From Mantamonas sphyraenae STR306 (Eukaryota; Protista; CRuMs): a DNA stretch of 64,000 nt. Of this stretch, positions 10,373-64,000 are shown in pieces. Below the pieces are notes generated by a model. It had not been told where the DNA came from. It saw only the letters and a program-made list of their open reading frames with translations, and ran no database searches. Location of the stretch: the NCBI GenBank assembly GCA_026936335.1, contig JAPMXV010000001.1, positions 1-64,000 on the forward strand, read 5' to 3'. Every line of letters begins with the position of its first letter. Position 1 is the first letter of the stretch. Made by a program: the position numbers and the translations under genes.

Positions 10373-10442
10373 ACGCTGCATCATTGCAATCCAATCACCC
10401 CAACTGCACATTACCTCGTCCGGCTGAACCCCGTGCATCCAA

Positions 10443-11919: not shown

Positions 11920-11996
11920 GCTGAACCTATCTGCTCTTTGTTTTCGGCTCTCTCTACCTTGCCTTCAAATCCCCTTGCCTCCGCGGGCGCCCAAAC

Positions 11997-13968: not shown

Positions 13969-14013
13969 CCGCTCTTTTTGTCTTTGGCTTGCCTTGGCTC
14001 CCAGCGCGCCCCC

Positions 14014-16784: not shown

Positions 16785-16850
16785 GGCGCCAAACCCTTTT
16801 GTGCGTTGGGTGCCCCACCGCGCCCAGCCGAATTGCCACCCACCGCCACC

Positions 16851-19841: not shown

Positions 19842-19869
19842 CGCGCGGTCGCACACAGTAAATCGCACA

Positions 19870-20730: not shown

Positions 20731-20984
20731 TGGCAAAACACAATCAGGGTGAAGGGAAAGGAAATGCACGCCATGAACAACCAGAAGTGATTTGCGCCAA
20801 GGTGCATAGTGGAGGGTAGACAGGTTCGTCTTGGCACCCATGCGCAAGTGCGAGCACCTGAACAGCAGCAGCCGGAACCTTTCACTTTCCGTCCACGCAC
20901 ACACGTACACGTACCAAGAGAGGAGCACACGCACAACGCAACCACAGCTACCACTACCACACAACACAAAGGAACGAGAGAACA

Positions 20985-21926
20985 ATGAGCGCGCAGAACA
21001 AGATCCAGGTGCCGACGGTGACGTTGAACAACGGAGTTGAGATGCCCGTGTTTGGCCTGGGCACATGGAAGTCATCGGATGAGGACGCACGGACGGCCCT
21101 GCGTGCAGCGCTGGAGGCAGGGTACACGCACATTGACGGAGCTGCAGTGTATGGCAACGAGGCAGTGCTGGGCGAAGAACTCAAGGCGCTGCTGGAAGAG
21201 GGAGTCATCAAGCGAGAGGAGCTGTTCTGGACGTCCAAGAACTGGAACACGGACCGCCACGACGTGCGCGCAGCTTTGGAAAAGACACTGAAGGACCTTC
21301 AGCTGGACTACGTGGATCTGTACCTGATCCACTGGCCGCAGGCGTTTGTGAAGCGAGAGGGCGAGGTGTTCCCCACAGACGAGGACGGCAAGGTGGTGAT
21401 GGACCCGGAGCCGCTGACGATTGCAGAGGTGTGGAAGCAGATGGAAGCATGCCTGGAGGCAGGTCTGACACGGGCCATCGGCGTGTCCAACTTCAACGCG
21501 GCGTCGATCGAGAAGCTGGTGGAAACGGCGACCGTGGTGCCTGCGGTGAACCAGGTGGAGTGCCATCCGCTTCTGCCGCAGACGGATTTGCTGGACGTTG
21601 GCCATGGCATCAAGTTGACAGCATACTCGCCGCTGGGGTCGCCCGGAGGCAGTGCAGGCCTGAACTTGCTCAAGGACGAAACGATTGTGGGGCTGGCAGA
21701 AAAGTACGGCAAGAGTGCAGCCAACATCCTGTGTCGATGGGCCATCCAGCGTGGCAGCATTGTGATTCCGAAGAGTGTGACGCCGAGCCGCATTGTGGAG
21801 AACATGGCTGTGTTTGACTTTGAGCTGACGGAGGAGGAGATGGCAAGCGTGGACAAGCTGGGTGAGAAGGGCCCTGCACGTGCAGTGGACCCCAGCTGGT
21901 TTGACTTTGACAAGGTGTACGAGTGA
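20985..21926 (+). CDS. Aldo-keto reductase, copy 1
   Basis: MPVFGLGTW, catalytic D/Y/K/H (IDGAAVYGNE, TSK, LIHWP), IGVSNF, AYSPLG, VIPKS. Confidence 0.97.
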   Translation: MSAQNKIQVPTVTLNNGVEMPVFGLGTWKSSDEDARTALRAALEAGYTHIDGAAVYGNEAVLGEELKALLEEGVIKREELFWTSKNWNTDRHDVRAALEKTLKDLQLDYVDLYLIHWPQAFVKREGEVFPTDEDGKVVMDPEPLTIAEVWKQMEACLEAGLTRAIGVSNFNAASIEKLVETATVVPAVNQVECHPLLPQTDLLDVGHGIKLTAYSPLGSPGGSAGLNLLKDETIVGLAEKYGKSAANILCRWAIQRGSIVIPKSVTPSRIVENMAVFDFELTEEEMASVDKLGEKGPARAVDPSWFDFDKVYE

Positions 21927-23572: not shown

Positions 23573-26005
23573 ATGGCAGCAGGAACGGCCGGCGGTGACC
23601 AAGGGCCGAGCACGTGGCAGTGGACGGCCGTACGCCTGTTGGTGTACGTGCTGTCCCTTGCTGTGTTGTGGACCGCAGGCGTGTTCTTCTTCACTCCCTA
23701 CTTTAATGTTTACGGGAACGACGCAATGTACAACGGGCCGGTGGATCTCACGCTGACCCGAAACTCATACCTGCTGAATGTCAAAGCGTCAAGCACCCTG
23801 AGCAAGTTCCCGCAGCTCATGCTGGGTCTGGGAGTGCAGATAGCATCGAATAGCACATCCAATAGCACGTGTCCAGACCACTTCTCGCGTGTTTCGCCCT
23901 CCCGCTACGGCGCCACATGTCTGCAAAAGACCTGGGTTCCCATCAACTTTGTCAAACTGTCTCGCAATGCCCTGACGTCGCAGGAACTCATTGGCGACAC
24001 GGTCGACCAGAGCAGGAAGGAGAAGAAGCTCGGCTTCTCCCTCTCTTGGACCAGGCTGGAAATCGGCGACCCTTCCAACGCCGTTGCACAACCAGAAGGC
24101 ACCATCGACGCATCCAGGCCCTTTGTCCGCTCTCAGAGCAGCACTGGGACTCTGTCCACCGCACCCTCACTCAACGCAACCTTTCAGATGGACCTGTGGC
24201 TGTTTGCAGGTGCCGCGTCGCCAAATTCACTCGTACGTCGCTTTACCCCGCGTGTTCCCTCCCAAGTGCGCCTTGTTGCTGACCCACCTTGTTGACGCAC
24301 CCATCCCTCCAGCTGCCGCTCTCCAGCTGCACGAACGATACGCAGTGTGCCGACTTTGTGCAAGAGCTCAATCGAACCAGTGTCACAGACCAGCTGCATC
24401 TCAACGAGAGCGATGTCCGCTGCTTTTCGCCCGACGAAACACCCAATTGGGGGGTGTTTGGTTGTGCTGTGGTACGTCCAAGCCTGCCTGGCTTTTCGCA
24501 CGGAAACTCCCTTGCTAACAAACGTCGCCCCTCGTTCTCACACACAGAAAATCCGGGCCAGCCAGCCTTCAGAATGTGACCTACAGCAGGTACAAGACCC
24601 TTTCTTTGCTGGCACGTACAATTTTGGTCCGCAGTGTAACTTTATCAACCTGTGGACCCTGTTTGTGTACCCGGGGGACTATCTCAATGCCGCCGGCCTG
24701 TGGAGCTGGGGTTCCATTGCCTTTGTTAGCCTCTTGGCTCTGTGGTTTTACTATGCACTGTTGTACGGCCGTCATCTGCATCTGCGGTACCTGGACAACT
24801 ACTTCTTTGTGTCGGGCACCGTTGATCTGGAATTGGACGGCAAGTACGACTTTAAGCTGTACGTCACGGGAGAACAGTTTACACGCAAAACCGGGTCGTT
24901 CAGAGTGCAACACGATGGTGACACCTTGTTTGAGTTTCCCTTTGTGGCTCGCTTTGACGAGGAGACCGTAGAAAACACAGGCAAGTCGACGCTGGTGTTT
25001 CGCAACAGCTACCATTGCACAGATGCTCGCAGCGAGGCCACGTACGACGTGCGATGGGACGGTGATTTCCACATGGCTGGATTCCGTGCACCTGAATGCC
25101 AGGTGGTCATCCGAAGGCGCATTCCCTTTGGCGTCAAGACCCGGATGAACATGTTCACCATGCCGTTTATGTGCGCGCTGCAACTCATCACAGGGCTGCC
25201 GCATCGCTCCGACTTTGCCCGATTCGACCAGTACTTGTTCACGGCTGTCTATTTTCTGTTTGTGCACGTGCCCTTCTGGCTGGTGGCGGCATGCATGCTG
25301 CTCTCATCCACCACGTCGCCAACCTCCGGTTCATCGTACTGGGGCTACCTGGACCAGCGTCCAAATCTCCCCGTGGTGCTTTATGGTGTTTTCTGCGTGT
25401 GTGTGTTGGCTTGTGTCATTATGAGCTTGTTGCCGTTTGGGAGGAGCGTGGAAGCGCGCAAGGATCGCAATGCTGGCCAAAACAACCTACCGGACGAGTT
25501 CCTGGCGGCAAACGGCATCGCACAGCCGCAAGCCAAACTCATGGAAGAGAATGCGGTGTTGATTGTCAACGACATGGGCGGCGTCAGGACCGAAGGAGGA
25601 AAGAACACAACACGGGCTGGCGAATTGGACGTGGAGTACGTGAACATGGGCACTGGTGAAGGCGCCACGCATTCTCGCAATTGGGATAGCGATGATGAGG
25701 ATGTGGGAGACGACGAAGAGGATATCACAACATACGAGCCATCTCGAGCAGACGAGCGTGACTTGGTGGTGGACACAGCCCAACTCAACTTCAAACCAGC
25801 GTCCAACCGTGAGCCAAGATTCAACAGGTACGAACGAGGCACAAGCGACGTGGACGAAACAGAGGTGCTGGCTGCAGCTATCCGCAAGTCGGCACCCAAG
25901 AGCCAGCAACGGAAGCTAAGGAAAGCAAAAGGTGTGGATCTTCGCTCGAGTGTCGATCTGCGGGAAGCCAAGACGGGAAGCAACCCGCTGAAGGGACGCG
26001 AATGA
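23573..26005 (+). CDS. Orphan multi-pass membrane protein (~758 aa) in the inverted-repeat spacer; exons 23573-24232, 24313-24471, 24548-26005
   Basis: Two phase-0 GTACGT..CAG introns join three ORFs. About four hydrophobic helices, a Cys- and N-glycosylation-bearing region after TM1, and an acidic C-terminal tail. Confidence 0.8.
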
Positions 26006-26062
26006 AGTCGACCACATGCATTGCATTCCTTGTCCCCCCACCACACCCCCTGCCCGTCTCCA

Positions 26063-27382
26063 TCAATCCTTCACATCGTTCACTCCATCCGCCGCAATCG
26101 CAAACGTGCACTCTGCCTCGGGCAGACACGGCGAGTCGTAGATCTTGCATACACGTGTCTCTCCCCTGCCCTTCCTCAGTGACAGGCGTGTCGTCGATGC
26201 ATGCGCCATGATGTGTCCTCCAATCGGCTTCTTCGGATCCGCCGCAAACATCGACGCCCCGTCCACTTGCGCCACCACCTGGTTCGTAATCACCACGGCC
26301 ACCCCAAACTCGTCTGCCAGACGCAGTAGCGAGCGCAAGAACCTCGCCAGATGCATCTGTCGCGCACTCAGTTCGCCACGCCCGCTGTAATCTGTGCGGT
26401 ACAGCGCTGTCGCGCTGTCCACCACCAGAAGCGCATACCGCGACTCGCTCATCATTGCCGATGCCTGCACAAGCAGTGCCATCTGGTGATCGCTGTTGTA
26501 CGCACGCGCATACGCCACGTTGTCCAGCACGTCCGACCCGTCCAGCCCAAACCGCTCCGCCACAGCAACCAGCCGCTCCGGTCGGAATGTGCCCTCCGTG
26601 TCGATGTACATCGCCTTCCCCTCCGCCCCTCCGTTCTCTACAGGCAGCTGGCACGTCACACACAGCGTGTGACAAATCTGCGTCTTGCCCGTCTTGAACT
26701 CGCCAAAGATCTCCGTGATGCTTCCCGTCTCCAGGCCGCCTCCAAGCAGCTGGTCCAGGTCCTTGCAGCCCGTCGTCAGCTGGATGATCTCCTGCCTGTT
26801 CTTGTACACCTCCGTCGCCGTCGTGAAGCCCATCGGCACCAGTTTGCTTGCTGTGCCCACCCTTCTCAGTCAGTCTCTCGCCCGAGCCACTTCACACACA
26901 CCCAGCCACTCGCACACACCTCCCTCCATCCGCCTCCTTCCCACCCCCTCCCCCTCCCCGCATGCCCCCAACATCCCTCATCAAACCCAATCCAACCCCC
27001 AACCCAACCCATGCTTCCACCTCCACACACTCGCCAACAAAACACAGGTTCTCGGGAAGTTCCCGCCAAAATCCGCTCCATCGCTCACCTCTTCGCTCAC
27101 CTCCCACCCTTGCTCTCTCTTTCCCCCCTTCCCGCTCCACTCACCCTCTGCAATCAGCTTGTCTGCCTTGGCTTCCGAGATTCCTTTGATGTCCATCAGC
27201 ACCTTCTTTGTCGAGTACGCCACTGCCTCCACCGTGTTGAACCCGGCCTCGATCAACTTCTTGCAGTCGGCTGCGCTGATCCCGTTCTGCTCCAGCGTCT
27301 GCACAGGCATCGGCCCGTACTCTCCCTCTTCTTCCTCCTCCTCTTCCCCTTCTTCGTATTCTTCTTCCTCGGCGTGCGACAT
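26063..27382 (-). CDS. RAD51: DNA recombinase RAD51, copy 2; exons 27382-27145, 26850-26063
   Basis: Protein identical to copy 1. Confidence 0.98.
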
Positions 27383-27622
27383 GATTTCCGTGTGTGCTTG
27401 TGTGTGTGCTTGTGGTTGTCCGAAAACGGGGTCGGCTTCCTCTTCCTTTTTGCCTTGTTGCCACTCGCGCATCGCTTTCCCCACCTGCTTTCACCCCTCT
27501 CCCACCCGTCATGCCGTCTCCATCTCCTCACTCCATCCACCATCATCCGCATCGAATTGCATTCCATTGCTCCGTTTCTCCCCACCTCCTCCCGTGCACA
27601 CTCTCATCACTCCAGCACCACA

Positions 27623-28564
27623 TCACTCGTACACCTTGTCAAAGTCAAACCAGCTGGGGTCCACTGCACGTGCAGGGCCCTTCTCACCCAGCTTGTCCAC
27701 GCTTGCCATCTCCTCCTCCGTCAGCTCAAAGTCAAACACAGCCATGTTCTCCACAATGCGGCTCGGCGTCACACTCTTCGGAATCACAATGCTGCCACGC
27801 TGGATGGCCCATCGACACAGGATGTTGGCTGCACTCTTGCCGTACTTTTCTGCCAGCCCCACAATCGTTTCGTCCTTGAGCAAGTTCAGGCCTGCACTGC
27901 CTCCGGGCGACCCCAGCGGCGAGTATGCTGTCAACTTGATGCCATGGCCCACGTCCAGCAAATCCGTCTGCGGCAGAAGCGGATGGCACTCCACCTGGTT
28001 CACCGCAGGCACCACGGTCGCCGTTTCCACCAGCTTCTCGATCGACGCCGCGTTGAAGTTGGACACGCCGATGGCCCGTGTCAGACCTGCCTCCAGGCAT
28101 GCTTCCATCTGCTTCCACACCTCTGCAATCGTCAGCGGCTCCGGGTCCATCACCACCTTGCCGTCCTCGTCTGTGGGGAACACCTCGCCCTCTCGCTTCA
28201 CAAACGCCTGCGGCCAGTGGATCAGGTACAGATCCACGTAGTCCAGCTGAAGGTCCTTCAGTGTCTTTTCCAAAGCTGCGCGCACGTCGTGGCGGTCCGT
28301 GTTCCAGTTCTTGGACGTCCAGAACAGCTCCTCTCGCTTGATGACTCCCTCTTCCAGCAGCGCCTTGAGTTCTTCGCCCAGCACTGCCTCGTTGCCATAC
28401 ACTGCAGCTCCGTCAATGTGCGTGTACCCTGCCTCCAGCGCTGCACGCAGGGCCGTCCGTGCGTCCTCATCCGATGACTTCCATGTGCCCAGGCCAAACA
28501 CGGGCATCTCAACTCCGTTGTTCAACGTCACCGTCGGCACCTGGATCTTGTTCTGCGCGCTCAT
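27623..28564 (-). CDS. Aldo-keto reductase, copy 2
   Basis: Protein identical to copy 1. Confidence 0.97.
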   Translation of the reverse strand: MSAQNKIQVPTVTLNNGVEMPVFGLGTWKSSDEDARTALRAALEAGYTHIDGAAVYGNEAVLGEELKALLEEGVIKREELFWTSKNWNTDRHDVRAALEKTLKDLQLDYVDLYLIHWPQAFVKREGEVFPTDEDGKVVMDPEPLTIAEVWKQMEACLEAGLTRAIGVSNFNAASIEKLVETATVVPAVNQVECHPLLPQTDLLDVGHGIKLTAYSPLGSPGGSAGLNLLKDETIVGLAEKYGKSAANILCRWAIQRGSIVIPKSVTPSRIVENMAVFDFELTEEEMASVDKLGEKGPARAVDPSWFDFDKVYE

Positions 28565-28803
28565 TGTTCTCTCGTTCCTTTGTGTTGTGTGGTAGTGGTA
28601 GCTGTGGTTGCGTTGTGCGTGTGCTCCTCTCTTGGTACGTGTGCGTGTGTGCGTGGACGGAAAGTGAAAAGTTCCGGCTGCTGCTGTTCAGGTGCTCACC
28701 CTTGCGCAAGGGTGCCAAGACGAACCGCTACCTCCACTACTGTATGCATCACACACCTCCCTCCAACCCGCATTTCATTCCAATCCCATTCTTCTCACCC
28801 GCC

Positions 28804-31800
28804 TCAACGCCAGCGCGAGTCCTCACCCCAACTCGAGTTGTTGTCCGTCATAAAGTCACCGTCAATCGACGTGCAGTTGCGGATGGCAAACTGAATGCGT
28901 TGGCGCATGATGTCCACCGAGGAGTAGTTGGGCATGTCGACGCTGAAGAAGCACGTGTGTGCCACCGGCATGCGCGAGTCTGGGTTCGATCCGCTCAATT
29001 GGTCAATCTTGAAGCGCCTATCAAAGTCGGCGTCTGTTGCAGGCAGCCTTGTGCGGCCCCACACAAACTTCAGGAACAGACGCTTGTCCGACTCGGAAAA
29101 GTCTTCAAACACCTGCCAGAAGAAGCGCACCGTTTGGTCGCTCACGCCGTAGCCTGTCTCCGCCGTGCGCTTCAGCATGGCCACGTCCACAGTTGGTTCG
29201 CCGCACACTGCCATCTCCAGCTCTTGCCACGTGAACCAGTTCAGCTGGCCGACGGGCACCAGCAGTCCCAGACCGTACAGCACAGCCTCGATTTGCGCAG
29301 CGCACTCCTTCTCCCTCACCTCGCGCACCAGGCGCACGTACTCGTGCCTGTTCTCAAATGTGAGCGGGATGTTGGCTCCGTTTGGCTTCAGCTCCACCCG
29401 GCGTCCGTCGCTCAGTGTCGTCACAAACACCTCGTCAAACACCTGTGCAAACGTCTCGGCGTCCACTCCCTCCTTCTCAATGTCCAGGATGCCCTTGAGA
29501 CATTGGAAGCACATCTGGTCCATCGAGTACAGGTCCTCGATCGTCACTTCCTCGCCCACCAGCCGCTTCCACACAGTCTTGGACAGGTTCAGGTCCAAGT
29601 AGTTCTTCGTGCGGATCGCTGAGCCCATGAGCATGCCCAACAGTTCGTACAGTTGCAGGTGCGTCGAGCTCGTCGACGACGGCTTCAGGATGAACTTGTC
29701 TCGTTCGTCGCCCACGTTGGCCTGTCCGTTCGGTGTGCGGATCATCATCGGGAACTCCGGTGCCTGGAATTCGGCCATCAGATCCTGCATCGACTCGCGG
29801 TACGGTCCGCCCGCGTCTTCTGACCCCTCGCCGATGAAGTTGATGCGGTACATACGACCGTCCTGTCGCAGCGCCTCCACGTTTTCGGTACGCAGCTTCT
29901 CGTTCACCTGGTGCATCAGGGATCCCTTCACACGGCCCGACTCCTTTGCAAACATGGCCTGCGGGCGGCTTACGTTGATCTCCGGGCGGCTCGACTGCGA
30001 GTTGGTGCTCGACAGCTTTGTCAGGAAGCGACTTTGGCGGATGTCCGCACACATGGCTCCCTTGAACTGAAGCACCATCGCACTCATCGACCAGCCTTCG
30101 TTTGCAAACTCTGCGTTTGTAAACGGAAGCAAACGCTGCACACGCTTCGACAGCTTCACCATATCGCGGAATTTGTCGCGGATCTCCATCACGTCCAACG
30201 CCGCCGCGCGTTTGTACTCGCCCGAGTTCTCCTGCACCAGCACGCTGAACTGCTTCTCCCGGAACGCGTTGTTGTTCATGTTGCTCACCTTGACTCCCTT
30301 CTTGGCTGCGTATCGCGTGCACAGCACCATCACCTCTTGGTACAACGCAAGCTGCTCCCGTTCGGAAACCAGGCGATGCAGGTCCGAGCGCAGGTCCAGC
30401 GCATATCGTGTGAACCAGCGTCGCGTGTCCTGCGTCCCGATCGGCTTGCGCGTGGGCCCACCCATCGTTGCAATCTCCTCCTTCGACATGGCAAAGTCGC
30501 GCACCTGCATGTGCGTCAGGTATCCCGCCGTCGACTTGACGTGGTCCATCTTGCCCAAGATCAGAAACTCGTCGTTCAACGCGTCTGCGCCGTCAACCCC
30601 GGAGTACACGGCAGACTCCACCAGCAACTCGCCATCCAAGTAGCCACGCATCGTGTTGCTTGCCTGGTCAAACGTGATGCCCAGGCGCACCAGCTTGTTG
30701 TACGGCACCGCGTTGGTACTCCAAGTCGAACCCACGCACAGTGCACCCGTCGATCCACGCAGGAACACACCACTCGCTCCCGTAATGTCGGTGCGCATCA
30801 ACACAATGTTCTCTTCCGCCTGGCTCGGAGGGAGGATGATGTCCATCAGCAACGTGTACGAGTTGACCTTGGCGCTCCCTGCAGGGGTGGCCGGCAGGCC
30901 GTGTCTCACATGCAGCGTCGAGTTGCTCGTCAGCTTCAGCGCCTCAAACTCTTCGCCCATCGAGTACGCTGTGCCCACTGTCGCTCCGCTCACGTTGCTC
31001 ACATACACCGACCCTCGGTGCTTGAACCCTCGGTCGCTCAGGTTCCAGTTGGACAAGTTGCCGCTCGACGGGTAGCCGTGCTTGAAATAGTCGCCATTCT
31101 CCCACAGCTTCTGCCTTGGACCTGTGCTGCTGCCGGCGCCACTGCTACCGCTACTGCCGCTGCTGCTGCTGCTGCTGCTTGACGATTTGCCCTGTCCGTC
31201 ACCGCCCACGTCGCCGAAAAAGTCCAACACCTCGTGGCTCTGCGAAAACAGCCCGTGGTCTTCGTGCTCCTCCAGCAGCTCCTTCATGGCACGTGACTCC
31301 TCCAGCTGACGCTGCAGAGTCAGGAACTGATCGATTTCGCCCTGCAGCATGCGCATCGTCGCTTCGCTCAGATCCACCCATGTTTCCTGGTGCACAGTGC
31401 TGCCGTGCGATCCTCGTCCCTTCTTGCGCTTCTTGGACTTGGTTGTGATCTTGTACAGGAGCTTGTTACGCCGCAGGTACTTTTCCATCGGTCCGTAGTC
31501 CAGCGAGAACGAGTGCTTCCACAGGGTGCCCTCGTTGTACTTGCGGAACTTCTGGTGCACAGACGACATCGACACCGCGCCCGCCACACACAGGTCTCGC
31601 AGGCACTCCAACAGCACCTGATCCACAGGCGGCAGCCTTGCCAAAACCTCCTCCGTTGTCTGCGGTTGCACCTCTTCCTCCTCCTCCTGCGCGTCCTCTT
31701 GTTGCTCGTTCTCGCCGCTCTCCTTGGCCTTCTTCTTGGCCGCCTTCAGCTCCATCAGCCTTTCGTGCTCTTCCTTGGCCTTGCGTGCCTGCTCGTTGCG

Positions 31801-34800
31801 CTCGACGCGCTTCGTGATGGCGTCCTGTGCGGTTTCCATGGCCACCGACAGCTCAAACAGCTCCTGCACCATGGCCGAATGCGTCGGGTTGTGCTTCTCC
31901 TGCGTTTGCAGTGACACCATGTACTCCATGGGGGCTTCGAGCGAGCTCAGGTCAGGCATCACCGAGGCAGGTGTAAATTGCTCCAGGTGGTACAACCATC
32001 GGCACAGCAGCTTGATCACCTGCGTGCGTACCTGCAGGTCCCACGTGCCGAGCCCATTGCTCAGCTGCACAAGCATGTCCTGGTTGTAGAATGCGCGGCT
32101 GCCCACATCTGCCAACAGCGACAGTACGCGCACTGCCAGTTTCTTGTTCGGCAGGTACATCGCCTCTGCAGGGTTGGCTCGCGCATCGTGGTACAGCGGC
32201 ACAACCTGCAGTTTGAAGCCCCAGTGGCTGGTGTGTTTGTGGCCCGGGTTGAACTTGATGTGCACCCTGCTGCCGGGTACAGAGAACGACGCCCAGTCGG
32301 TCGGCGAAGGACCACCCACGCGACGCAGCAAGTTGTTGTTGCCGTCGTAAAACTCCACCTGGTCGTCCTTGTGCGTTGCACAAGAAGCATGGAAGATCAC
32401 CTGCATCTTTGACGCATTCTTCATGTGGATCGAGCGCGACGAGATCGCGTCCTTGCCAGTGTACGGATGCCCCGTGCTCACGCTCTTTGCGCCGCGGCTG
32501 CTCTGGTCGCACAGGTCCGCAGCACACGCCATCGCAAGACCCACGTCCACGCCACTCAGCGTATCGGTGCTCGTCACAGACCCGTCCTGCACCGTGTACC
32601 ACGTCGACTCGGTCGTCTGTGTCACGCCGCTCTCCTGCGACTCGGCACTGTTCTCCTCCTGCGTCAGCCCCAGCCACTGGCCAACCACCTCAAAGCCCAT
32701 CTTGGCCTTGCCCTTGCCCTTGGCGTCCTTGCCTTCCTCCTCTTGCGCCTCGTCGAGCACCTCCTCGTCGCCATCGCCCTCAAGCAATTCCCCAATGGGC
32801 GTGTCCTGCGTCTTCTTGGCGTGTCGTGCGCCCTCACCCTCGCCTTCGCTCGGCGACGCATCGCTCGACACCTGTACGTCCATAATCACCTTGAGTTGGT
32901 CCAGCAGGCGGTTGACCATGGCCACCCCGCGTCCATGCGAAGGGTCGGCGTCCATCAACTTCAACAGTCGGTAGTACCAGTCCCCGCTGTCGTGAGCGCC
33001 AATCAGGTCGGACAACGGCAATTGCTTCGGCCAGTTGGTCACCAGGTTAATCAGCACGGTGCGCGCGTGGTAATCCTTCAACATGGAAAACACTCGCATC
33101 ATCGTCTTGCTGAACGCCTCGGCCGACGAGAGCATGGCAAGGTCGCCGTACTCCTTCTCCACGTTGGCTCCCACAAAATCGCGTGCCGTGTTTCCTGTGC
33201 TGCTGCCTCCACTGTCCGCTTCCTTGTCCTGTGACGTGCTGTCCCCTCCGCTCGACAGACTTGCCAGCGACGACGAGGACGAACTCGACGACGAGGACGA
33301 ACTCGACGACGAGCTGCCTGTGCTTTCCGACGGCAGTTCCACCGTCGTAACGCCACCTGTTGCACGCAGAGCCGCAGCGTCCCGATCACTCTCCGAGCGC
33401 CACGTGTTGTGCATCTCTTCAGCAACGGACGAGTCCACAACCATGTGAGCCGCGCCCCTTGTCCTTGCCGCCTTGACCTTCTTCTCCAGCTCCTGGTCGC
33501 GCATGTCGTGCGGGCGCATCTTGAGCGCATACATCGTCTGCGTTTGCGCAAGCAGCATCTGCAGAGCCACCGCCTTGGCCTCAGCCTCTTCCACAGGCAC
33601 CCAGTCGTTCTTCTTTGTGAAGCTGGGTTGCAGAGCACACTCGATCATCGTGTTGAGCGCCTGCTGGTCGATACACAGCTGCGCCCACTCCGACGACTCC
33701 ATCACGTTGGCCAGTGCCTGGAACATCGCCGCACGCAGCGCCGTCGACAGCGGCGTTTCCGTGCGCATCTCCTCCATGTTGTGCATGAGGTAATGGAACG
33801 GCTCAAAGTTGTCTGAACTCGCCTCAAAGTGGGCCACGTCCTGCGGCGAGAAGCGGTGTACTGGCCGCAGCTGCTCCAGCGGGATGTTTTTCACCACGCC
33901 TTGCGACGCCGTAAAGTCCAGCAACACCTTGCACTTGGTTTTGCCTGGATGGTAGTACACCACCGTGCCTTGGCTGACCACGCCGTCTGCGTCCACCACG
34001 ACCGTCGCCCCAAGGCGGAGGTGCTCTTGCAGTCCACCCAGAACCGTAAGCACCGCCGGAATGGCGAGCACGTTCATCTGCCATTCCTCGTCCTGCCCGT
34101 CTGTCTGCTCCTGCGACCACTCGCCACTGGCCTCCTCAAAGCCGTCCACAAATGCAGGCAGCATGCGCCAGGCGCCAAGCAGCTTCGGCATGACGATGTC
34201 GCGCCACTTGTCGCCCTGCAGCACCTTGCGCAGGAGAAGAGCACACTCGTTGGCCAGTGCACGGTCGGACATGGCCTGCTCGTGCGTGAGCACAAACCCG
34301 TCCAAGTCTTCCAGGGTTCCCTTGCCCTTCTTGGCAGTCGATGATTGCTTGCTGTCGCGTTTGGTCTTGCCCTTTCCTCCCTTGACGCCGCCCGAACCAC
34401 CGACACCACCACCACCACCACCACCACTGCTGCTGCTGCTTCCACCCTGCGACTCTGGCTCGTCCGAGTGTCCCAGGCTCATGTCAAACTCGCGCAGCAG
34501 TTCTTCGTCGACCAACGAATCCGACGCGTCCTTGTTCAGGAGGCGCTCGTGCGTGTGGTTCCAGAACGGATGCAGACCCGCCCAGGTGCGTGCGATCTGG
34601 TTGAACAGAAACACGACCAGGTTCTCATCGGGCTGTGCGTCCTCGTGCGAAAACGCAAGCCCCATGATGCGGAACAGACCGTTGGTCCACACGGAGCAGC
34701 GCTCGTGCTGGTGCGTCGCCTGGAGGATCAAGTAGTACAAGCGCATCCACGAGCGTGTGCCAATCATGCCACGGATCAGATGCGACGGCGAAGCAAGCGT

Positions 34801-37800
34801 GTGCAGAAGCGCAAGCAGTTCCATCATGTGGCACACGTCTGCCTTGCGCGTGCGCTGTTCCGTGTGCATGTTGTCCACAATGCGTGTCATTTCGTCTTGG
34901 ATCAAGTGCAGCGTGTGCAGAACCAGCGTGCGCGACGCGCTCTCCTCCACGGCCTCGTACTCGTCTGCGTTCTGGCAAGCACGCACAGCAAGCAGCGAAA
35001 ACAGGTTGTAGCTGCTGGTCTGCAGCAGTACTTCCAGGTACTGCCTGTTCACCTCCTCTGCAGTCAAGCCAGACCTCTCCAGGAACATGTGGTCCAGCAC
35101 GCGCGCCTCGTTCTCTGCCTCTTCCTTGGCCGCCTGGGCTTCCAGCGCCTTTGTCTCCTGCTCCTTCGCCATGAGCCTTCGTCGGCGACGCATGCGCCTG
35201 CGTGCATTCTTGCTTAGGCTCTTCCACCCATCTGTGCCGGGCTCGATCAGGCCGTCGTTGGCCTTGTCCTTGCCCTTGTCCTTGTCCTGCGTCTCGCCAA
35301 CCGTTTGCGTCAACGTTTCCTTGGCATCCTGAAGCTGGAAGAGGGCGTCCAGAAGCACATCTTCCTTCTGCACAACCATCGAGTGCGACGTAGCTTTGAG
35401 TAGCGGGTCTGCCGCAAGGATTTCGTCCAGAGTGTCCAGCAGCCCGACCTCCAGCAGGAAATCGTGCTGAAGCGCCGGAAAGTCCAGGTTGTACGCCTTC
35501 ATGATAAGCAACTTGACCTGCATGCTGATTTCCGTGCTGCCCAAAAGTCTGGTCATGCGCTTGTACACGGCAAAGAAGGCCTCGCGTGTCTGTTCACTCA
35601 CAACGACGCCGCAGCCCTGGATGCCATGCATGTAGTGCGTCTTGATGCACTCGGTGCGTGCGAGCACATCGGTGACGCTGAGAAGGCCGTCGTTTGTACG
35701 CACGCTGAGCAGACGCGCCAGGCACGACATGCCTGTCAGGCGTCGCTCACCGCGCAGACGTCGCAGCTCAAACACTTCGTACAGCTCTTGGGTGCGCACT
35801 GAAGATTGCAGGAAGGAGAGAGTCGACGAGGCAATGCTCGAATGCACTGCGTGGGCGTGCGAGTCAAAACCCGCCTTGCTGATGTCCTGCCACAGGGCAA
35901 AGAAGAAGCGCATCCTGCGAGCCCCCTCGGTCAGCTTGCGTTCCTTCTCCACATCCGCACGCATGGCGTCCAGGTTGGTCACTGCGCCAGAAGTTGTGCG
36001 CGGCAGATGGCCAGCCACCATGCTGGTGGTCACGTTGCCCGACACTGTGCGAATGAGCTGCGGACCCGCGGTGCGCGTAGGCGCAACCGCGCCCGAAACA
36101 GTGCGCGACAGACCACCCGCAACGGCGTTGCTCATGCCACTCTTGGTGCGGCTCAGAGTGCGTGTCAGCGAGCCTTGCGTCTGCAGCTGCGAGCCCGTGC
36201 CCGACGGCTGCCGTTGCAGCGACAGAGTGCGTGACGTCGAGCTCAGGCTGCCGCCAGCCGAGTCCAGCGACTCGGACGCAGACGACTCGGTGTCGTCCAG
36301 GCGCGGCGCAACCCAAGTGGGCACCACCTCCATCAGGAAGCGTGCCCGTTCGGCCACGCGTTTCTCCAGGTCCTCGTAGCTCTCCTCGTCTTCGTTGCGC
36401 TTCTTGGCACACCACAGATACAGCGTGTGTGCTTTGGACCACATCTTTTCAAACTGGTACATCGTTGTGTCGTCCACGTCGCCGCCCGTAGCCCAGATGG
36501 CCACGTCGTTGGCGGTGCCGCTCATGTGCACCGTGGCGGCGAGCAGATGCCGGATCGCGCTCCACAGGTGAGGGTTCTTGCTCACGATGCGCTTGCGCTT
36601 GAACGTCTTTTTCAGCTGCGCAATAAACGTCTTGCCGATGTCTGTCTCGTGCACAATGGCTTGCAGCACCATTTCCGCAGCCTCGCGCTCCTGGCGCTCA
36701 AATTCGTCCTGCGGCGGGTTGAGATCGCGCAGACCACCCACCAGCAGACGCGACTCGATCCAGTCCAGCAGACGCGACTCTGTGTCCTGCACGTCCACGG
36801 TCATGAGCATGGCGCACAGCTCGGTGCTCATCAGAACCACCGTCTTGTACACGTCCAACAGCCAGCCGCGCACTCCGGTGCCGCCCAGCTTCTCCATGTC
36901 CAGGACAAACAACGCGTCGAGGCTTTCGACCAGTTCCGTGGACGCCTCCACGATGTCCTGCACCTCGCTGAGCATGTCTTGCTCGCGCAGAAGCAGCAGG
37001 CACGTGGCCACAAAGGGCACCAGCTCGCCCACCAGCGAGGTTTTCAGCACCGTGTTGGCAAAGTGCACACGCTCTTGCACAGGCTGATCGTTGTTGCCCA
37101 ACTCGCGCACGTGCCACTGCATGACCTTTTTCAGGATGCGGGTGGCGCCGTTCATCACCAGGCGCACGACACGTTGCAGCATGTGCATGCGTGCGTCGCG
37201 CACAGCTGTGCTCACTGCCTGCTCGGACACAAGCACGAGCACGGTCTGCACAACTGCACTCAGTGTGCTCAAGTACTCGCGCGGTGCCGTGCTGGCTTGC
37301 GCCTCGCGCTGCTCTTTGCTCAGGTGCAACCCGACTGCCAGGACGTCAGAGATGTGCTCTTCAGCCATTTGCACAATGGTGTCCACCACCAGGAGGACGT
37401 TTTTGGTCGGCGGCATCTGATCCTCGGCGCCTCCGTGGACGAGCTGCACAAGGGCTTCGGGCTCACGGTATTCAGACATGAGTGTTTCCAGAAGCGCAGC
37501 TCGGCCCGGACGGTCACGCACAAAGTGCTTGCCGTACGTTTGGCGCTCGGACAGCAGGCTCCCGAGAAGGCTTGCACGAAGGTTTGCGTCGGGGAATTCG
37601 CGCAGGGCACGCGACGCCTCCAGCTCTACGGTGTGCGTCAGGCGTGCGCTCTCTGCACTCACTTGTTCGGGTGATGCACCTGCGTTGGCGCCCACTGCAG
37701 CCTTGCCCTTGCCCTTGGCGCCGCCCTTTTCGGCGGCGTGGGCCACGGCCTCTCTGTGCTGCACAACGGCGCGCACGTCCAGAGCACCAAGGTACAGTTC

Positions 37801-56210: not shown

Positions 56211-58410
56211 TCACCTGATCACCACCGAGGATGAGTCGAGTACAGAGGTGTCTTGCGAGCCGGTGGACGCGGTGCTGTTGTAGCCAAGAAACCAGAAGCG
56301 AAGGGTTTCGTCGCCGGCGCCGCTGACAATGGTCGACCCGTTCGGACTCATAGCCAGGTAGAGAACGCGCATGGTGTGACCTGTGAGAGTGCCCACGGGC
56401 TGCATGGACGGGTAGCGCCAGACGATGATTTGGTTCTGAGAGTACCCGTGTGTGGAAATGAGCTCCAGGCAAGTCTTGGCCCACATGAGGTTGCACACCT
56501 GCGAACCCGTGTCAATGCTGTTCAAGCACTTGCCACTGTCTAGGGTCTTCCAAATTTTGATGTTCCTGTCCGCGGTGCCGCCGCCACTGGCCAGGACGCC
56601 GCGCTGGTGGGGCGACCACGCAATGGCCTTGACGGCGGCCGTGTGTTCTTCAAACCGCAGCACAGGACTGCTCTGGCCCGAACTCCAAATGAGCAACTTG
56701 TTGTCGTTGCCTCCCGACGCCAGCTGCTGACCATCGGGTGACCATTTCAGGCCGCACACCTCCTGGCGATGGCCTTCGAACTTGCTCACGTACGACGCTC
56801 GCGAACGCATGTCCCGGTTGAGGATGGTGCGGTCGCGCGAACCGGAGGACAGCACAGGGCCGTTCCAAGCAAGAGCCCCTGCGCGGATCGTATGGCCAGG
56901 CAAGGAGCGCACCAGCGACAGCTGCTGTGCATCCCACAGCTGAACACGTCCGGTGCTTGTACCCACGGCGAGATGGCCTCCGCGCTGAGTCCAGGCCACA
57001 GACGCCACCGTTCCGTATGCGTCGTCGAGCGTGCACAACTTGGTCACCTTGCTTGTGCAAGCGCTCCACAGATAGATGCTGGAGCCCAGACCAACAGCGA
57101 GCACATTGCGAGAGCCCCAGTCCAGCAGATTGAGATAAAAGTCGTCCTGAAGCGAGGGCGCGTCCAGGACCTTGAACGGCGTCTTTGGAATCTTGCGTGG
57201 GGCCTTGCGTGGAGACTCGAGCAGTTTGTGTGTGCTTGCGCGCAGTGGAGACAGCGAATAGGCCTCCATGCGTCGCTGCACCTCTTGCTCTGCGTCTGTG
57301 AACATGCTGGTCCCATGTCGCGCGCTCGTGCGGAATTTGAACATGGACTTGCCGTGACCGCTCCTCTCGCTCGCACGCCCGTCCTCTGCGTCCATCTGCT
57401 CCGAGGAAGAGGATGATGTCGATGAGGAGGAGGAAGAGGAGGAGGAGGAGGAGGAGGACGTGTGGTCGTCTTCGCCCAGCAGCTCGCTCTTGAGCATCAT
57501 GGAATAAATATCACCATCATCGTTTGCTGTAGGCCAACGCAACGCGCAAGGCAAGGCCGATGCCCGGCGTCAGTGCTTGTGTGTGTGTGTGTGTGTGTGC
57601 GTGCGTGTCTTTGGTGGTGGTGGGGCAAGAAAAGGGCGTGTGCGTCTCACCTCGTTCGCTCCCGCTGCGCTCTTTGCGTTTGGACGGCGATGTAAACTTG
57701 AGCGAGTACGACTCGGCGTAGGAGGAGTCTCCGCGAGACGGGATGTATCTGTGGGCAGGGTAGAAACAGGGTAAAGTGGATCAGGGTCAGCGTAAGGGCT
57801 TGCAGGACAGGTTGAGAGCGCGCCAAACACACCGATCACTGTAGGCGTCCTTGCTGGATGACACATGGTGGCTTGAGGCGGCCTCAAACATGGAGCGCGT
57901 CTGTGTGTCACTGAAGGCGTCATCGGCATCACTTGAAGTGCTTTGTACGTCGCCTGGCTCGTCAAACTCGTCGTCGAGGGCAGCGTTGGCGCGCATCGTT
58001 TGGGCGAGCTCTTCAAGCTCCATTCCCGAGTCGGAGGCCCCTGCCGGACCACCCTCGTCATGCCTTGCATCGTCTTCGTCCATGAGCAGACGCTGGGCAA
58101 CTGGAGACGCTTTGCTGGATGCGTTCAGAGGGCGCCGCCGTTGCGTTCGCGACGCAGACGAGCGTGCCGAGTTGCCCGTCGACGACTGGCTCCCGGGGGA
58201 CACGAGGAGGCGGGAGACACGCACGGGACTGGCAGTACCAAAACCTGGCGACGCACTGACGGTCGAAGCTGCAGATGGGCTGTTCAGTGAGGCCGAAGCT
58301 CGGGACGCGGACGACGGCGTCGCAGGAGGCGTGCGGCTAGCAGGCGAGCCCCGTCGAGGCGAGGCTCGGCGTATGGGAGAACGCAGGCGTGATGCAAACG
58401 ACGAGTCCAT
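56211..58410 (-). CDS. FZR1: APC/C activator CDH1/Fizzy-related; exons 58410-57833, 57748-57651, 57526-56211
   Basis: C-box DRYIPSR across intron 1, PFKVLDAPSLQDDFYLNL, WD40 repeats, RVLYLAMSP, C-terminal IR tail. Confidence 0.96.
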
Positions 58411-58484
58411 GTCTGCGATTCGGGAGGTGGGAGATGGTTTGGTGCAGGGGGCGACGGCTTCCCCATTGAAACCTTTTTTTTGCC

Positions 58485-61400
58485 ATGAAACTCCACGTGG
58501 CTCTCCCTGCGTTTCTTCTCCTGCTGCTCGCCCTATGCGTGGCTAGCGAGAACAACGGACGCATGCGCACAGAAACAGACCTGCTGTGCATCGACTGCGC
58601 GCTCCATGAAGCCGCAGTGTACGTCGACTGGCAACCCGGCTCTGTCGGTACCGGTGCGTTTTTTTTCTGGCTGCAACCGACGGCGGAGGCCACGCGACAC
58701 ATCTGGCACCGACGCTCGACACTCACACTCGCACGCATGCCCACACCCTCGACCACAGGCTCAGTGCAACTGGCCATCCGCCACAACGACGAACTGGTGA
58801 CAACGACCATCCAGGCCACTCACCAGGGCGTGTCGCTCTTTGGAGGTAGGTGGCGGAAAAGGTGGCAGCGGGCGGAGGCCTTGAATTTCCGAGCATTCGC
58901 GAAAACAGCCTGGTTTCCGTCGTTCGACGGCCCGTTGTGTGTCGTGCACCAGTCTCCCACACCCTCAACACACAGCACACACTGACACCCATCACATGCA
59001 ACCTCTTTACACACAGCTGTGCACGCACAGGCATCGCAATGTCTGGAAATCAACACACACAATCTCACAGTGCGCGGGAACGAACTCGGTTCGCGCTTCC
59101 TGTCGGGCTCAGTGGTCCTCAACGCGGCACAAGGCGTGCGCGTACAGCCGGGAACCAAGCTGGACTCTACAGGGGGCACCCTCCTACTGGATGACAACCA
59201 TCTTAGTGGCGACAAGGTCGAAGGCGGGACAATCAACGCAATCACGCTCAACAACCTGCTGGTCACTTCTACACTGCAAACTGCAGCGGGTGCGGCCACC
59301 ATGTCCACCAACACCCTTTCCGGCGCAAACACACTCACTCTCAGCCCTACAGGCTCGGGTAAGGTCCGCTTGGCCGGAAAGAATCTGGACCTGACAGCTG
59401 GCTCGCTCAACCTCGACAACGACGAGCTCAGTGGCGACAAGGTGGAAGGAGGCACCATCAACGCAATCGCCATCAACACGCTGACTTCGGGTCAGGTGAC
59501 CGTGGACAACCTGCGCCTGGACGGAAACACTCTCTCCTCGCTCACAGGCAGCCTGACACTGCGCACAAACGACGGCAGCGCCGTCATTGTGCCTGCGGGC
59601 GAAACTCTGGACGTGAGCGCGGCCACCTTTACGCTGGCCGACAACCAGATTAGCGGAGACAAGATCAACGGAGGCACAGTCGACGAACTGCGCATCACAC
59701 GCCTCAACAGCTCCGAAACAGACATCGGCACTCTGCATCTGCAGGGTGACACCATCAGCACCGTAGGCGACAACCAAGACATCGTCCTGTCGCCCAAGTC
59801 GACCACAGCTCGTGTACGTGTGCAAGCATCGCACACCATGGCCTTCTCCGGCGCCACTCTGGACCTTACTGGCGGCACACTCGTGTTGGACAACGACGAG
59901 ATCAGCGGTGACAAGGTGGAGGGAGGCACGATCAACGCCATCACCATCAACACGCTGACATCTGGCCAGGTCAACGCAGACAACCTGCGCTTGGACGGCA
60001 ACACAGTGAGCTCGACCAATGCCAACGGACACATCGTGCTCACGCCCAACGGAGCGGGCAACGTCGTGGTCACAGTCGGTAAATCCCTGGACCTCACGGG
60101 CGCCACGCTCATCCTGGACAACGACGAGATCAGCGGCGACAAGGTGGAGGGAGGCACCATCAACGCCATCACCATCAACACGCTGACTTCTGGCCAAGTC
60201 AACGCTGACAACGTGCGCCTGGACAACAACGAGGTGAGCACCATCAGCGGCAACCAAGACTTGCGACTGAACGCAGACGGCACGGGCCAGGTGCGCGTGG
60301 TCAGCGGCAAAGTGCTCAACGCCTCGTCGACAACAGTGGACATGCGCTACAGCGTGGTGCTTCTGGACGACGACGAAATCAGCGGAGACAAGGTGGAGGG
60401 CGGCACCATCAACGCCATCACCATCAACACGCTGACCTCGGGCCAAGTCAACGCAGACAACCTGCGCCTGGATGGAAACACGCTCATGTCAACCGACACC
60501 AACGGCAACATCGTGCTCACGCCCAACGGAGGCGGACAGGTGGTTGTTACGCCTGGCAAGACGCTGGTGTTGACAGGTGCCACCGTGGTCTTGGACAACG
60601 ACGAGATCAGCGGCGACAAGGTGGAGGGCGGCACGATCAACGCAATCACCATCAACACGCTGACCTCGGGCCAGGTCAACGCAGACAACCTGCGCATGGA
60701 CGGCAACACCCTCTCGTCGACCAACGCCAACGGACACATCGTGCTCACGCCCAACGGCGCTGGAAAGGTCGTGATCACGGCTGGCAAGTCGCTGGACCTC
60801 ACGGGCGCCACGCTCATCTTGGACAATGACGAGATCAGCGGAGACAAGGTTGAGGGTGGCACCATCAACGCCATCGCCATCAACACCCTGACATCTGGCC
60901 AGGTCAACGCAGACAACCTGCGTTTGGACGGCAACACAGTGAGCTCCACCAACGCCAACGGACACATCGTCATCACCCCGAACGGCGCAGGAAAGGTGGT
61001 GATCACACCCGGAAAGACGCTGGATCTCACGGGTGCCACACTCATCCTCGACGACGATGAGATCAGCGGTGACAAGGTGGAGGGAGGCACCATCAACGCC
61101 ATCACCATCAACACGCTGACTTCTGGCCAGGTCAACGCAGACAACCTGCGCATGGACCTGAACACACTGTTCACCACAAACACAAACGGAAACATCATCA
61201 TGACTCCAAACGGCCAAGGCCGAGTGGTCGTGTCTGCACAAAAGTCCCTCGATGTGACTTCGGCCACCGTCATTGTCGACGACGACGAGATCAGCGGTGA
61301 CAAGGTGGAAGGCGGTACGATCAACGCCATCACCATCAACACGCTGACATCTGGCCAAGTGAACGCAGACAACCTGCGTCTGGACAACAACCGCATCTCG

Positions 61401-64000
61401 GTGACCAACCCCGATGGCGACCTGTACCTTACCAGCGGTCCCACACAGCTTGTATGCAACACAAACGAGTATTGCCAGAACGTCACCGTATGCCAGAACC
61501 AAACCAGGTGCAACTGGCAGCACGAGAGCTGCCCGACACTGACCACACAGTGCAGCACGGTGGCGTTGTGCAGCAACACAACTCTCGGGACGAACTGCAC
61601 ATGCTGCACAGGTGCCAACAGCACCAACTGCACTGCAATGGCAAACTGCACAGGGCCTGCATGCATGGCGTGCAACTGCAGCTCGTGGAACACCACGCAG
61701 ACGTGCAACACCACCCAAGAGTGTGTCAACACCACATCTTCCACAAGCACACCGGCCATGACGTGCAGCAACACGACCACATGCAGCAACACAACTCTCG
61801 GGACAAACTGCACATGCTGCACAGGTGCCAACAGCACCAACTGCACTGCAATGGCAAACTGCACAGGGCCTGCATGCATGGCGTGCAACTGCAGCTCGTG
61901 GAACACCGCACAAACGTGCAACACCACCTCCACGTGCGTCAACGTCTCTGCATGTGTTCTCAACGTCACCTCCTGCTCGAACTACACTGCGTGTGCAAAC
62001 ACTTCCATGTGTGCCAACGTCACGTCATGCTACCAGACAGCCACAAGCATCGTTTTCCAGCCAGGCAACACCTTGGACATGACCAACACGACACTCGCCT
62101 TGGACGACGATGAGATCAGCGGCGACAAGGTGGAAGGAGGCACCATCGACGCCATCACCATCAACACCTTGGCCTCTGGCCAGGTGAACGCAGACAACCT
62201 GCGATTGGATGGCAACACAGTGAGCTCCACGGATGCCAACGGACACATTGTGCTCACGCCCAACGGAGCGGGCAACGTCGTGGTCACAGCTGGCAAGACG
62301 CTGGACCTTACAGGAACGACCCTGGTGCTGGACAACGACGAGATCAGCGGAGACAAGGTGGAGGGCGGCACCATCAACGCCATCGCCGTCAACACCTTGA
62401 CGTCGGGCCTCATCGACGTCGACAATCTTCGAATCGACGGCAACAGCATCGTGGCCACGAATGCACAGGGAAACATCGTGTTCACTCCGGCTGGAAGCGG
62501 ACACGTCGAGGTGTCGCCCGGCAAAGCGCTCGTGGCGGCCAATATCACCGTCATCCTGGACGACGACGAGATCAGCGGTGACGCCATCCGTGGCGGCACC
62601 ATCAATGCCACTCTCATCAAGCACACCATTGCACATAAGATTTGGATTGACGACATGCTCATTGACGGCAATCGCATCCAGTCGCGCAACGACTCTGTGC
62701 AGCAGCTCGTCATCCGTCCCGAAGGCCAGGCCAACTTCAAGCTCACTCCAGGCGCGTATCTCGATGTACGCAACACCAAACTCGTCATCGATGACGATGA
62801 AATCAGCGGCGACAAAGTCGAGGGCGGCACGATTTTCAACATCACCATTCGCCGTCTCGCTTCCGCCCAGATGACCGTGGACAGCCTGCGCCTCGACGGA
62901 AACACACTGAGTGGCCTCAACGCACAAGGCCCTGGTGACGTCGTCTTTGTGCCCAAGGGAACTGGCAAGCTCGTGCTGGAGCCTGGTCACGAGCTGGATC
63001 TGCGCGGCACAACCCTGCTGCTTGACGACGACGAGATCAGTGGCGACAAGGTGGAGGGGGGCTCCATCGACCAAATTGCCATCGTCACCATGCTCAGTTC
63101 GCTGATCCATGTGGACAGGCTCAAGCTGGAGAACAACACCCTGAGCACCATGCAAACAAACGGGGACATTGTGCTCACCAGCGCCGGCACAGGCAAGGTC
63201 ACAGCCTCAAGCTACGTGCACGTGGACAACATTCACCTCGACGCAGATCGCATCACCACCCTGGGTGGCAACGTCGACCTCGTGTTTTCCCCCAACGGGC
63301 CGGGTGTGGTCAAGGTTGCGGCGGGCCGCTTCCTGGACTTGCGCAACGCCACCGTCACTCTTGACGACGACGAAATCAGCGGCGACAAGGTCGAGGGAGG
63401 CACCATCAACTCCATCACCATCAACACGCTCAACAACCTGTTTGCGTATGTGGACAACGTGACGCTGGACCAAAACACAGTGGGCACAAGCAACGGCACG
63501 GACCTTGTCATCGAGCCGGCGTCCACCACAGTGGACTTTCAGTCGGGCAAGCAGGTGAACTTTGTGGGCACCACGCTGCTGCTTGATGACGACGAAATCA
63601 GCGGCGACAAGGTGGAGTACGGCACCATCGAAGGCATCACGATCAACACCCTGAGCACAAACCAGATCAATTCGGTGAACATCAACACAAGCCATTTGGA
63701 AGCCATGACGATGTCCAACTCCAAGATGTACGCCACGCAGGTGAATGTGGACTCGCTTATCCTCACCAACGCCACGATCTCGGCCAAGGCAGACCGTGAC
63801 ATCCTGCTTACTCCCAGTGGCTCCGGCGCTGTGCGTGTGGCCGCAGGCGACACGTTGGTGCTCACGGGTGTCACCCTGATCCTGGACAACGACGAGATCA
63901 GCGGCGACAAGGTGGAAGGCGGCACCATCAACGCCATCACGATCAACACGCTGACGTCGGGCCAGGTCAACGCGGACAACCTCCGAATGGACGGCAACAC
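58485..64000 (+). CDS. Giant secreted repeat protein, truncated by the window end; exons 58485-58845, 59017->64000
   Basis: Signal peptide MKLHVALPAFLLLLLALCVAS. Phase-1 intron GTAGGT..CTGAC..CACAG. The frame appears open to the window end, which explains its absence from the ORF track. Confidence 0.9.
59180..64000 (+). repeat. At least 18 copies of a ~228-bp (76-aa) coding repeat LDNDEISGDKVEGGTINAITINTLTSGQVNADNLRLDGNT..
   Basis: ISGDKVEGG cores at about 59200, 59430, 59650, 59900, 60130, 60380, 60610, 60835, 61060, 61290, 62115, 62345, 62570, 62800, 63035, 63375, 63600 and 63900. Confidence 0.97.

Follow-up and report, generated by a model that had tools for sequence, protein, structure and literature searches.

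A nuclear gene of the protist Mantamonas sphyraenae predicted to encode a giant secreted fibre protein with phage-like shaft repeats and a C-terminal Peptidase_S74 domain

RESULTS

Gene structure at the fibre locus

We analysed a 64,000-nt window of Mantamonas sphyraenae STR306 (Eukaryota; Protista; CRuMs; GCA_026936335.1, contig JAPMXV010000001.1, positions 1 to 64,000 of the forward strand). This contig (G000:C1, hereafter C1) is 441 kb long and begins with the window; the downstream DNA was also analysed. At its right-hand end, from position 58485 onwards, lies a gene (the fibre gene) for a protein of ~10,300 amino acids (aa), which starts with a signal peptide, continues into an array of 76-aa repeats related to phage tail-fibre sequences, and ends beyond the window in a Peptidase_S74 domain (S74), which in phages acts as chaperone for trimeric fibres and spikes. 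A preliminary description of the window had recognised the repeats and proposed retrieving the downstream C-terminus, which yielded this last domain. The features of the gene in the window are listed below (HMM, hidden Markov model; TRF, Tandem Repeats Finder).

58485..58544, plus strand: signal peptide, 20 aa, MKLHVALPAFLLLLLALCVA, predicted cut before SE (translation; small residues at -3/-1)
58485..58653, plus strand: exon 1, signal peptide and short LCIDC...YVDW module, phase 1 end before GTGCGT
58654..58758, plus strand: intron 1 (predicted), 105 nt, GTGCGT...CACAG, phase 1 (frame arithmetic, local translation)
58759..58845, plus strand: exon 2, 87 nt, SVQLAIRHNDELVTTTIQATHQGVSLFG, phase 1 end before GTAGGT
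58846..59016, plus strand: intron 2 (predicted), 171 nt, GTAGGT...ACACACAG, phase 1, CTGAC ~30 nt 5' of the acceptor
59017..64000 (in the window), plus strand: exon 3, continuing past the window to the stop at 89741-89743, with one frame change en route
59046..61439, plus strand: shaft repeats 1-11, the first four more diverged, units 5-10 nearly regular (HMM, TRF, phrog_15769, Melnitz tail fibre)
61440..61913, plus strand: cysteine-rich insert, 158 residues, inside repeat 11 after model position 55 (translation, HMM gap, Cys counts)
61914..64000, plus strand: shaft repeats 12 to about 22 in the window, the array running on to C1:65576 and ending in the GNVGIGTTNPQYLLQVG tip motif (HMM)

As the preliminary description had pointed out, the gene is absent from the list of open reading frames (ORFs) of the window, because its plus-strand frame (58986-63998) has zero stops and exits the window. 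In the whole contig, this main frame is open through C1:78491 (6,502 codons) and overlaps by about 180 nt with a second frame of 3,809 codons (C1:78314-89740), which ends at the stop codon at C1:89741-89743. The gene is split by a one-base frame change near C1:78330, at a short C run within a propeller blade (C1:78314-78491); save for this one shift, ~10,300 codons are open. The frame change looks like a one-base indel and not an intron because the propeller sequence flows smoothly from frame to frame, and it may be an assembly error, since the downstream frame stays fully open.

The signal peptide at 58485, also called earlier, is the sole hydrophobic segment of the ~10,300 residues in a Kyte-Doolittle scan, and an equivalent signal peptide is found in a paralogue on the same contig. 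An in-frame stop at 58983-58985 must be spliced out and falls inside predicted intron 2. Splicing at the gene start had been proposed before and is retained here, but the count of one intron is not: the gene probably has two GT-AG phase-1 introns. The two-intron model is preferred because the exons align with those of the paralogue and the splice positions coincide. Exon 1 aligns with the paralogue exon 1 (LCINC...YVDW there) with an E-value of 2e-6 and exon 2 with its counterpart with an E-value of 5e-5 (protein alignments; the exons were compared singly, and the spliced three-exon protein was used for the frame check only). The donors and acceptors of both introns are at identical codon positions in the two copies, and the intron DNA has no similarity between them though the flanking exons align. 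Similar signals (GTGAGA, CTGAC, CCTACAG) are seen in the introns of the neighboring CDC20/Fizzy gene.

Shaft repeats and cysteine-rich insert

The repeats occupy the first ~2,200 residues of the fibre protein, with the unit pattern DDDEISGDKVEGGTINAITINTL...DNLRLDGNTVSSTNANGHIVLTPNGAGNVVV and a period of 228 nt (Tandem Repeats Finder). With an HMM trained on six units taken from the protein itself, the array (59046 to C1:65576) resolves into 29 units of 76 aa, complete or partial; about 21 lie in the window, where at least 18 had been counted earlier. Between repeat units, dS (synonymous divergence) is 0.36-1.5 and dN (nonsynonymous divergence) is 0.04-0.3, with a median omega (dN/dS) of 0.14; the units are old and under purifying selection. 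Scanning homologues with the repeat HMM revealed that the 76-aa unit is a composite of two modules. Positions 26-65 (DNLRLDGNT...PNGxGxVxV) recur alone, with a period of ~35 aa, in many phage proteins, and other homologues have a 71-aa unit that combines positions 1-25 (LDxDxISGDKVEGGTI) with GKTLDxxxGTLxL.

All but one of the 35 cysteines in the fibre region (34) fall within the cysteine-rich insert, which also has many NxS/T sequons and is itself internally duplicated; no Pfam match was found for 61440..61913. The fibre protein is probably N-glycosylated.

Tip, propellers and Peptidase_S74 domain

Downstream of the last repeat, the order is GNVGIGTTNPQYLLQVG, ...EIRCEVVCG, SBBP propellers, ...VQRCEFYSKACG...VANAWNLFSDERLK, and Peptidase_S74. 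SBBP (PF06739) is found within C1:68001-88000 (80.1 and 101.4 bits, Pfam cut-off 20.5), and self-similarity indicates that propeller-like sequence is unbroken over ~7,700 aa; each chain would have about 17 propellers. Most of the fibre protein is beta-propeller and not fibre. It is also about six times larger than the more than 1700 aa seen in the preliminary description.

Peptidase_S74 is found at C1:89303-89464 (61.2 bits, cut-off 22, E 1.1e-16; Pfam). The S74 cleavage motif S-D-x-R-x-K, with its Lys five residues past the Ser, is present (NLFSDERLKTDV), and its SDERLK can be aligned to SDRRIK in chain A of a solved phage long tail fibre (PDB 6f45). The nearest relatives of the domain are 'tail fiber domain-containing' proteins (40-53% identity), and the named ones are bacterial (Armatimonadota, Arcicella and a marine bacterium).

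According to the genome scan, S74 and the fibre repeat are confined to two loci, both on C1. Other giant SBBP-filled open frames of 10,699, 10,900, 7,123 and 6,665 codons exist in the genome, none with S74:

C25:~146000-207500, giant SBBP frame
C26:~152900-163700, giant SBBP frame
C67:~9000-21900, giant SBBP frame
C30:~25800-37800, giant SBBP frame

According to its Pfam description, the SBBP repeat is found mainly in prokaryotes. We note that the longest published transcript of this organism (32.28 kb; PMC10492846) was considered as the transcript of the fibre gene and rejected, since the 10,699- and 10,900-codon ORFs exist as well.

A shorter paralogue on the same contig

The second locus (C1:143911-151000; L010, L012) lies 86 kb from the fibre gene and holds a paralogue with a signal peptide, the same two intron positions, ~24 repeats, the tip motif and S74, without propellers. 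Its tip directly joins the chaperone (...GIGTETPQYLLQVGTSGDGSVAVGNAWNLFSDARLKK), where the S74 motif reads SDARLK. The propeller array of the long copy looks inserted into the tip because the paralogue tip motif passes straight into the chaperone. Identity between the two copies is a mosaic (92% over 2.1 kb, 68% over 2.4 kb and 85% over 0.64 kb, with ~30-35% at the protein level for exons 1-2), which suggests gene conversion; the tract with 92% identity has a dS of 0.16 and an omega of 0.15. In the assembly, the reading frame of the paralogue shifts by one or two bases at five or more points, one of them within S74. Either this copy was constrained until recently, or its breaks are assembly errors.

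Homologues of the repeats

A homology search with the repeats, which the preliminary description had proposed, found both viral and prokaryotic relatives, and the link to structural or tail-fibre repeats of marine phages that it had suggested is borne out. The phage family phrog_15769 (PHROGs) matches the repeats in six stretches with an E-value of 1.5e-24 (a further value is 2.4e-11). Among cultured phages, the only tblastn matches (E 1e-7) are the four Melnitz myophages, T4-like Kyanoviridae of a marine Methylophilales strain. The Melnitz match is a gene annotated as tail fibre, of 648 aa, within a row of tail-fibre genes; by BLASTP, this tail fibre matches with an E-value of 6e-14 and 62% identity over 60 aa (...VDVDNLTLDGNTVSSTNSNGDINLTPNGTGTVVV...).

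A word search with the repeats retrieved 674 metagenomic proteins, and 13 IMG/VR contigs hold relatives of the repeat. Contig context was examined for six homologues: it is phage-like for four, and a bacterial chromosome for the other two. P0001, which ends in K1-lyase_C, adjoins a Phage_stabilise gene. Genes of phage-type replication or tail functions accompany P0007 (DnaB, RNR, Thy1 and Dam on a contig of 55 kb) and P0009 (Pam3_Gp34 and D5 primase next to it), and P0009 itself carries PTL_trimer. P0121 (3,756 aa) contains the DNLxLDGNT module 24 times or more and lies in L018:1677-21271, on a contig that also has a faint match to Phage-Gp8 (baseplate); because of this protein, giant forms of the fibre can be said to occur in phages too. 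A 2,703-aa DUF4815 protein is encoded beside it. The full composite repeat is found in two proteins in bacterial chromosomal settings, P0010 (among Mur ligase and EPSP synthase genes) and P0003 (among GldH and Por_Secre_tail genes).

The 71-aa ISGDKVEGGTI variant is carried by P0016 (L022:8001-9900), which is in a 1.42-Mb record of 24.5% GC (GCA_905367645.1, HG999358.1). The neighbors of P0016 are eukaryote- or giant-virus-like (Tcp11, PI-PLC-X and a papain-type peptidase), and its repeats run on in another frame beyond the end of the called gene.

A profile scan of genome contigs with the repeats gave a single Planctomycetia fragment only, and a PDB sequence search with the repeats gave no match. 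Matches of the repeats to YdaS_toxin, Dehydratase_SU, NAD_kinase_C and diol dehydratase were rejected as spurious, since they add up short patches from different repeats; NCBIfam scores fall far short of the curated cut-offs, and most Pfam rows are without any single passing stretch. DUF2807 (beta-helix adhesin head) scores 19.8 bits, below its Pfam cut-off of 24.2.

Genomic context

The fibre gene is head-to-head with a CDH1-like gene, as had been noted before; the neighbor is of CDC20/Fizzy type, and the spacing of 74 bp between the two divergent start codons implies a very compact bidirectional promoter.

56211-57551, ATG 58410, minus strand: CDC20/Fizzy-type WD40 gene (Pfam WD40_CDC20-Fz, E 2.6e-127)
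58411..58484, no strand: spacer between the divergent start codons (58410, 58485), 74 bp

The downstream genes are a class II aminoacyl-tRNA synthetase gene with a WHEP domain and a MyTH4-RhoGAP gene. GC content is 0.58-0.61 throughout the region. The relative synonymous codon usage of the fibre gene correlates with that of the neighboring genes (r 0.94), and its GC content at third codon positions is 0.78 as compared to 0.68-0.75 in these genes. No viral hallmark genes are found beside either copy, and the flanking ORFs are host genes. A Capsid_NCLDV search of the genome was also blank, but its control was silent too, so this result carries no weight. The fibre gene is a nuclear host gene and not an endogenous viral element, and the earlier claim of integration in the host chromosome is upheld by the host neighbors, the shared intron positions and the host codon usage. 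Contamination or a viral island was rejected because of the host neighbors and codon usage.

DISCUSSION

Comparison with known systems

MYRF is a eukaryotic host gene with an adopted phage S74 self-cleaving trimerisation domain; its product is a transcription factor bound to membranes, which has a DNA-binding domain of the NDT80 type but lacks a fibre. Unlike MYRF, the fibre gene keeps a phage-like shaft, and our scans found neither a DNA-binding domain, NDT80-type or other, beside S74 (Pfam) nor a transmembrane segment (hydrophobicity scan). With Melnitz-type tail fibres it shares the DNLxLDGNTxSSTNxNGxIxLTPNGxGxVxV module and the long repetitive shaft, and with other phage proteins the ISGDKVEGGTI module. 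In most phage proteins the two modules are separate, with periods of 35-71 aa, whereas in the fibre gene they are fused into a regular 76-aa unit that recurs about 27 times. Phage fibres also differ in being virion parts encoded in tail gene clusters, without signal peptide or introns.

Endosialidase-type tailspikes and fibres have a C-terminal intramolecular chaperone (Schwarzer et al. 2007, as cited in PMC12220804). Like them, the fibre gene has a C-terminal S74 with the Ser...Lys motif after the fibre, which would be expected to trimerise and then release itself. In phages, however, the chaperone directly follows the trimeric stalk, whereas here ~7,700 aa of propellers lie between tip and chaperone. 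A parallel in protist genomes is with the fibres of polinton-like and giant viruses (PMC12220804), which are likewise large repetitive proteins with an S74 end. Those are found within viral elements, whereas the fibre gene stands by itself between host genes; it exceeds them 2.6-fold in size, contains introns and is built on another repeat.

Weighing the explanations

We consider it rather probable that the fibre gene is a nuclear protist gene for a secreted giant fibre, which would be assembled as phage fibres are and would have a phage- or bacterial-derived core. It seems that the cell took over a phage fibre as a surface filament. Part of the preliminary description, in which the fibre was called virus-derived, is retained here: kinship to phage fibres holds, but, with these repeats and S74 found in bacterial chromosomal genes as well, a viral origin is no more than the favoured possibility.

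Several observations weigh against this explanation. The frame change separates the fibre from S74, and if it were real and fixed, the chaperone would stay untranslated. The introns and the expression of the gene are predictions that rest on sequence logic, and the same repeats are present in bacterial chromosomes, so that a phage donor is not established. We know of no precedent for ~17 monomeric-type propellers between a trimeric shaft and its chaperone. Structure predictions are not decisive for a trimer either: ESMFold2 runs with three copies of four repeats gave 0.22, 0.71 and 0.25 (median 0.25, under the mark). Searches with the AlphaFold2 monomer of four repeats gave nothing significant by Foldseek against PDB (best E 7.6) or against BFVD (best E 3.9e-3), and the best Z of 3.6 from VIA wide is below noise. 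The weak top fold rows are single chains of triple-stranded beta-helices (gp5, VgrG).

Among the alternatives, the donor may have been bacterial: a 'tail fiber domain-containing' surface or prophage-remnant gene, e.g. from prey, could have been taken up by this bacterivore and would give the same anatomy. The ordinary bacterial chromosomal neighborhoods of the composite repeats in P0010 and P0003, the bacterial names among the S74 relatives and the chiefly prokaryotic SBBP all fit such a donor. Yet most of the contigs examined are phage-like, the only cultured match is a phage, and the bacterial copies may themselves be prophage-derived, and we regard a bacterial donor as unlikely, if worth keeping in mind. 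Still less likely, in our judgement, is a donor among the viruses of eukaryotes (polinton-like virus, virophage or giant virus), although these are known to integrate into protist genomes and S74-terminated modular fibres of up to 3.9k aa occur in polinton-like viruses of many protists (PMC12220804). The AT-rich record of P0016, with its eukaryote- or giant-virus-like neighbors, would also agree with this, but neither copy has a viral hallmark gene beside it, the flanks are host, and in the fibres described from polinton-like viruses the repeats are laminin-G, collagen and PTR, not the 76-aa one.

The shaft could, on the other hand, be a monomeric beta-solenoid adhesin, with the distant S74 as a relic or a mere self-cleaving module. 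The sub-threshold DUF2807 match, Bactofilin matches in some homologues, the indecisive ESMFold2 trimer runs and the long stretch between shaft and S74 would fit it. We nevertheless find it very improbable. AlphaFold2 modelled the monomer with a mean predicted local distance difference test (pLDDT) of 74.5, essentially no DSSP strands and dips in confidence at the unit borders; the absence of any intrachain sheet at this confidence counts against a solenoid, and a strandless monomer hints at the pattern expected if the sheets need partner chains. The homologues are phage fibres, one of them with PTL_trimer, and S74 comes directly after the shaft in the paralogue, with the Ser...Lys motif conserved in both copies. 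It is hardly credible that the locus is a dead gene, an artefact of assembly or contamination from a bacterium or phage. Such an origin might be suspected from the frame changes in both copies and from the fact that the M. sphyraenae culture is xenic and the assembly is from long reads (PMC10492846), but the locus lies between host genes in a 441-kb contig, has predicted spliceosomal introns and host codon usage, and is open save for the one shift, with omega values of 0.14-0.15.

Proposed assembly and history

If the fibre gene encodes a secreted giant fibre, its product would consist, in order, of the signal peptide, a small N-terminal module, the composite shaft repeats, the tip motif, the SBBP propellers (~7,700 aa, set into the tip between two RCE...C motifs) and S74. 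In the secretory pathway, the C-terminal S74 domains would bring three chains into register, and the shaft would then fold as an intertwined trimer. The chaperone would cleave itself at the Ser of NLFS|DERLK. The product may be an extracellular filament displaying three long propeller strings, which would be adhesive or ligand-binding; possible ligands are prey bacteria, the substrate and the cell's own coat. The long tail fibres of T4 measure about 70 nm per 1,300 residues, and by this rough analogy the shaft could have a length of the order of 100 nm.

As for the history, we infer that phages or bacteria were the source of the core, comprising fibre and chaperone, and that it settled in the genome long ago. 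The older plan would survive in the shorter paralogue, and the long copy would have gained its propellers from a family expanded in the host. A foreign fibre-plus-chaperone gene that was duplicated, with one copy then fused to propellers, is the simplest account because S74 and the repeat are at two loci only and SBBP arrays are found in several other giant ORFs of the genome. The short and long paralogues would thus be a before-and-after pair for the propeller fusion.

A more far-reaching idea, to which we give little credence at present, is that this bacterivorous gliding flagellate has captured a phage receptor-binding fibre with its chaperone, has grafted host propellers into the tip, and uses the trimer outside the cell to catch or recognise bacterial prey or to grip the substrate while gliding. 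If true, part of a eukaryotic cell organelle would be built by the assembly rules of phage fibres.

Trimeric fibres chaperoned by S74 are already known in phages and in protist viruses, and the chaperone alone in MYRF. In the literature searched, we found no such gene in Mantamonas sphyraenae and no domesticated phage-type fibre in a protist host gene. Nor did that literature contain a eukaryotic gene standing on its own that retains the entire plan of the fibre and adds a signal peptide, introns, a glycan- and cysteine-rich insert and ~17 propellers of a host family. CRuMs are a deep-branching group whose cell surface is almost unstudied, and the fibre gene offers in them a testable case of phage structural modules being reused by eukaryotic cells.

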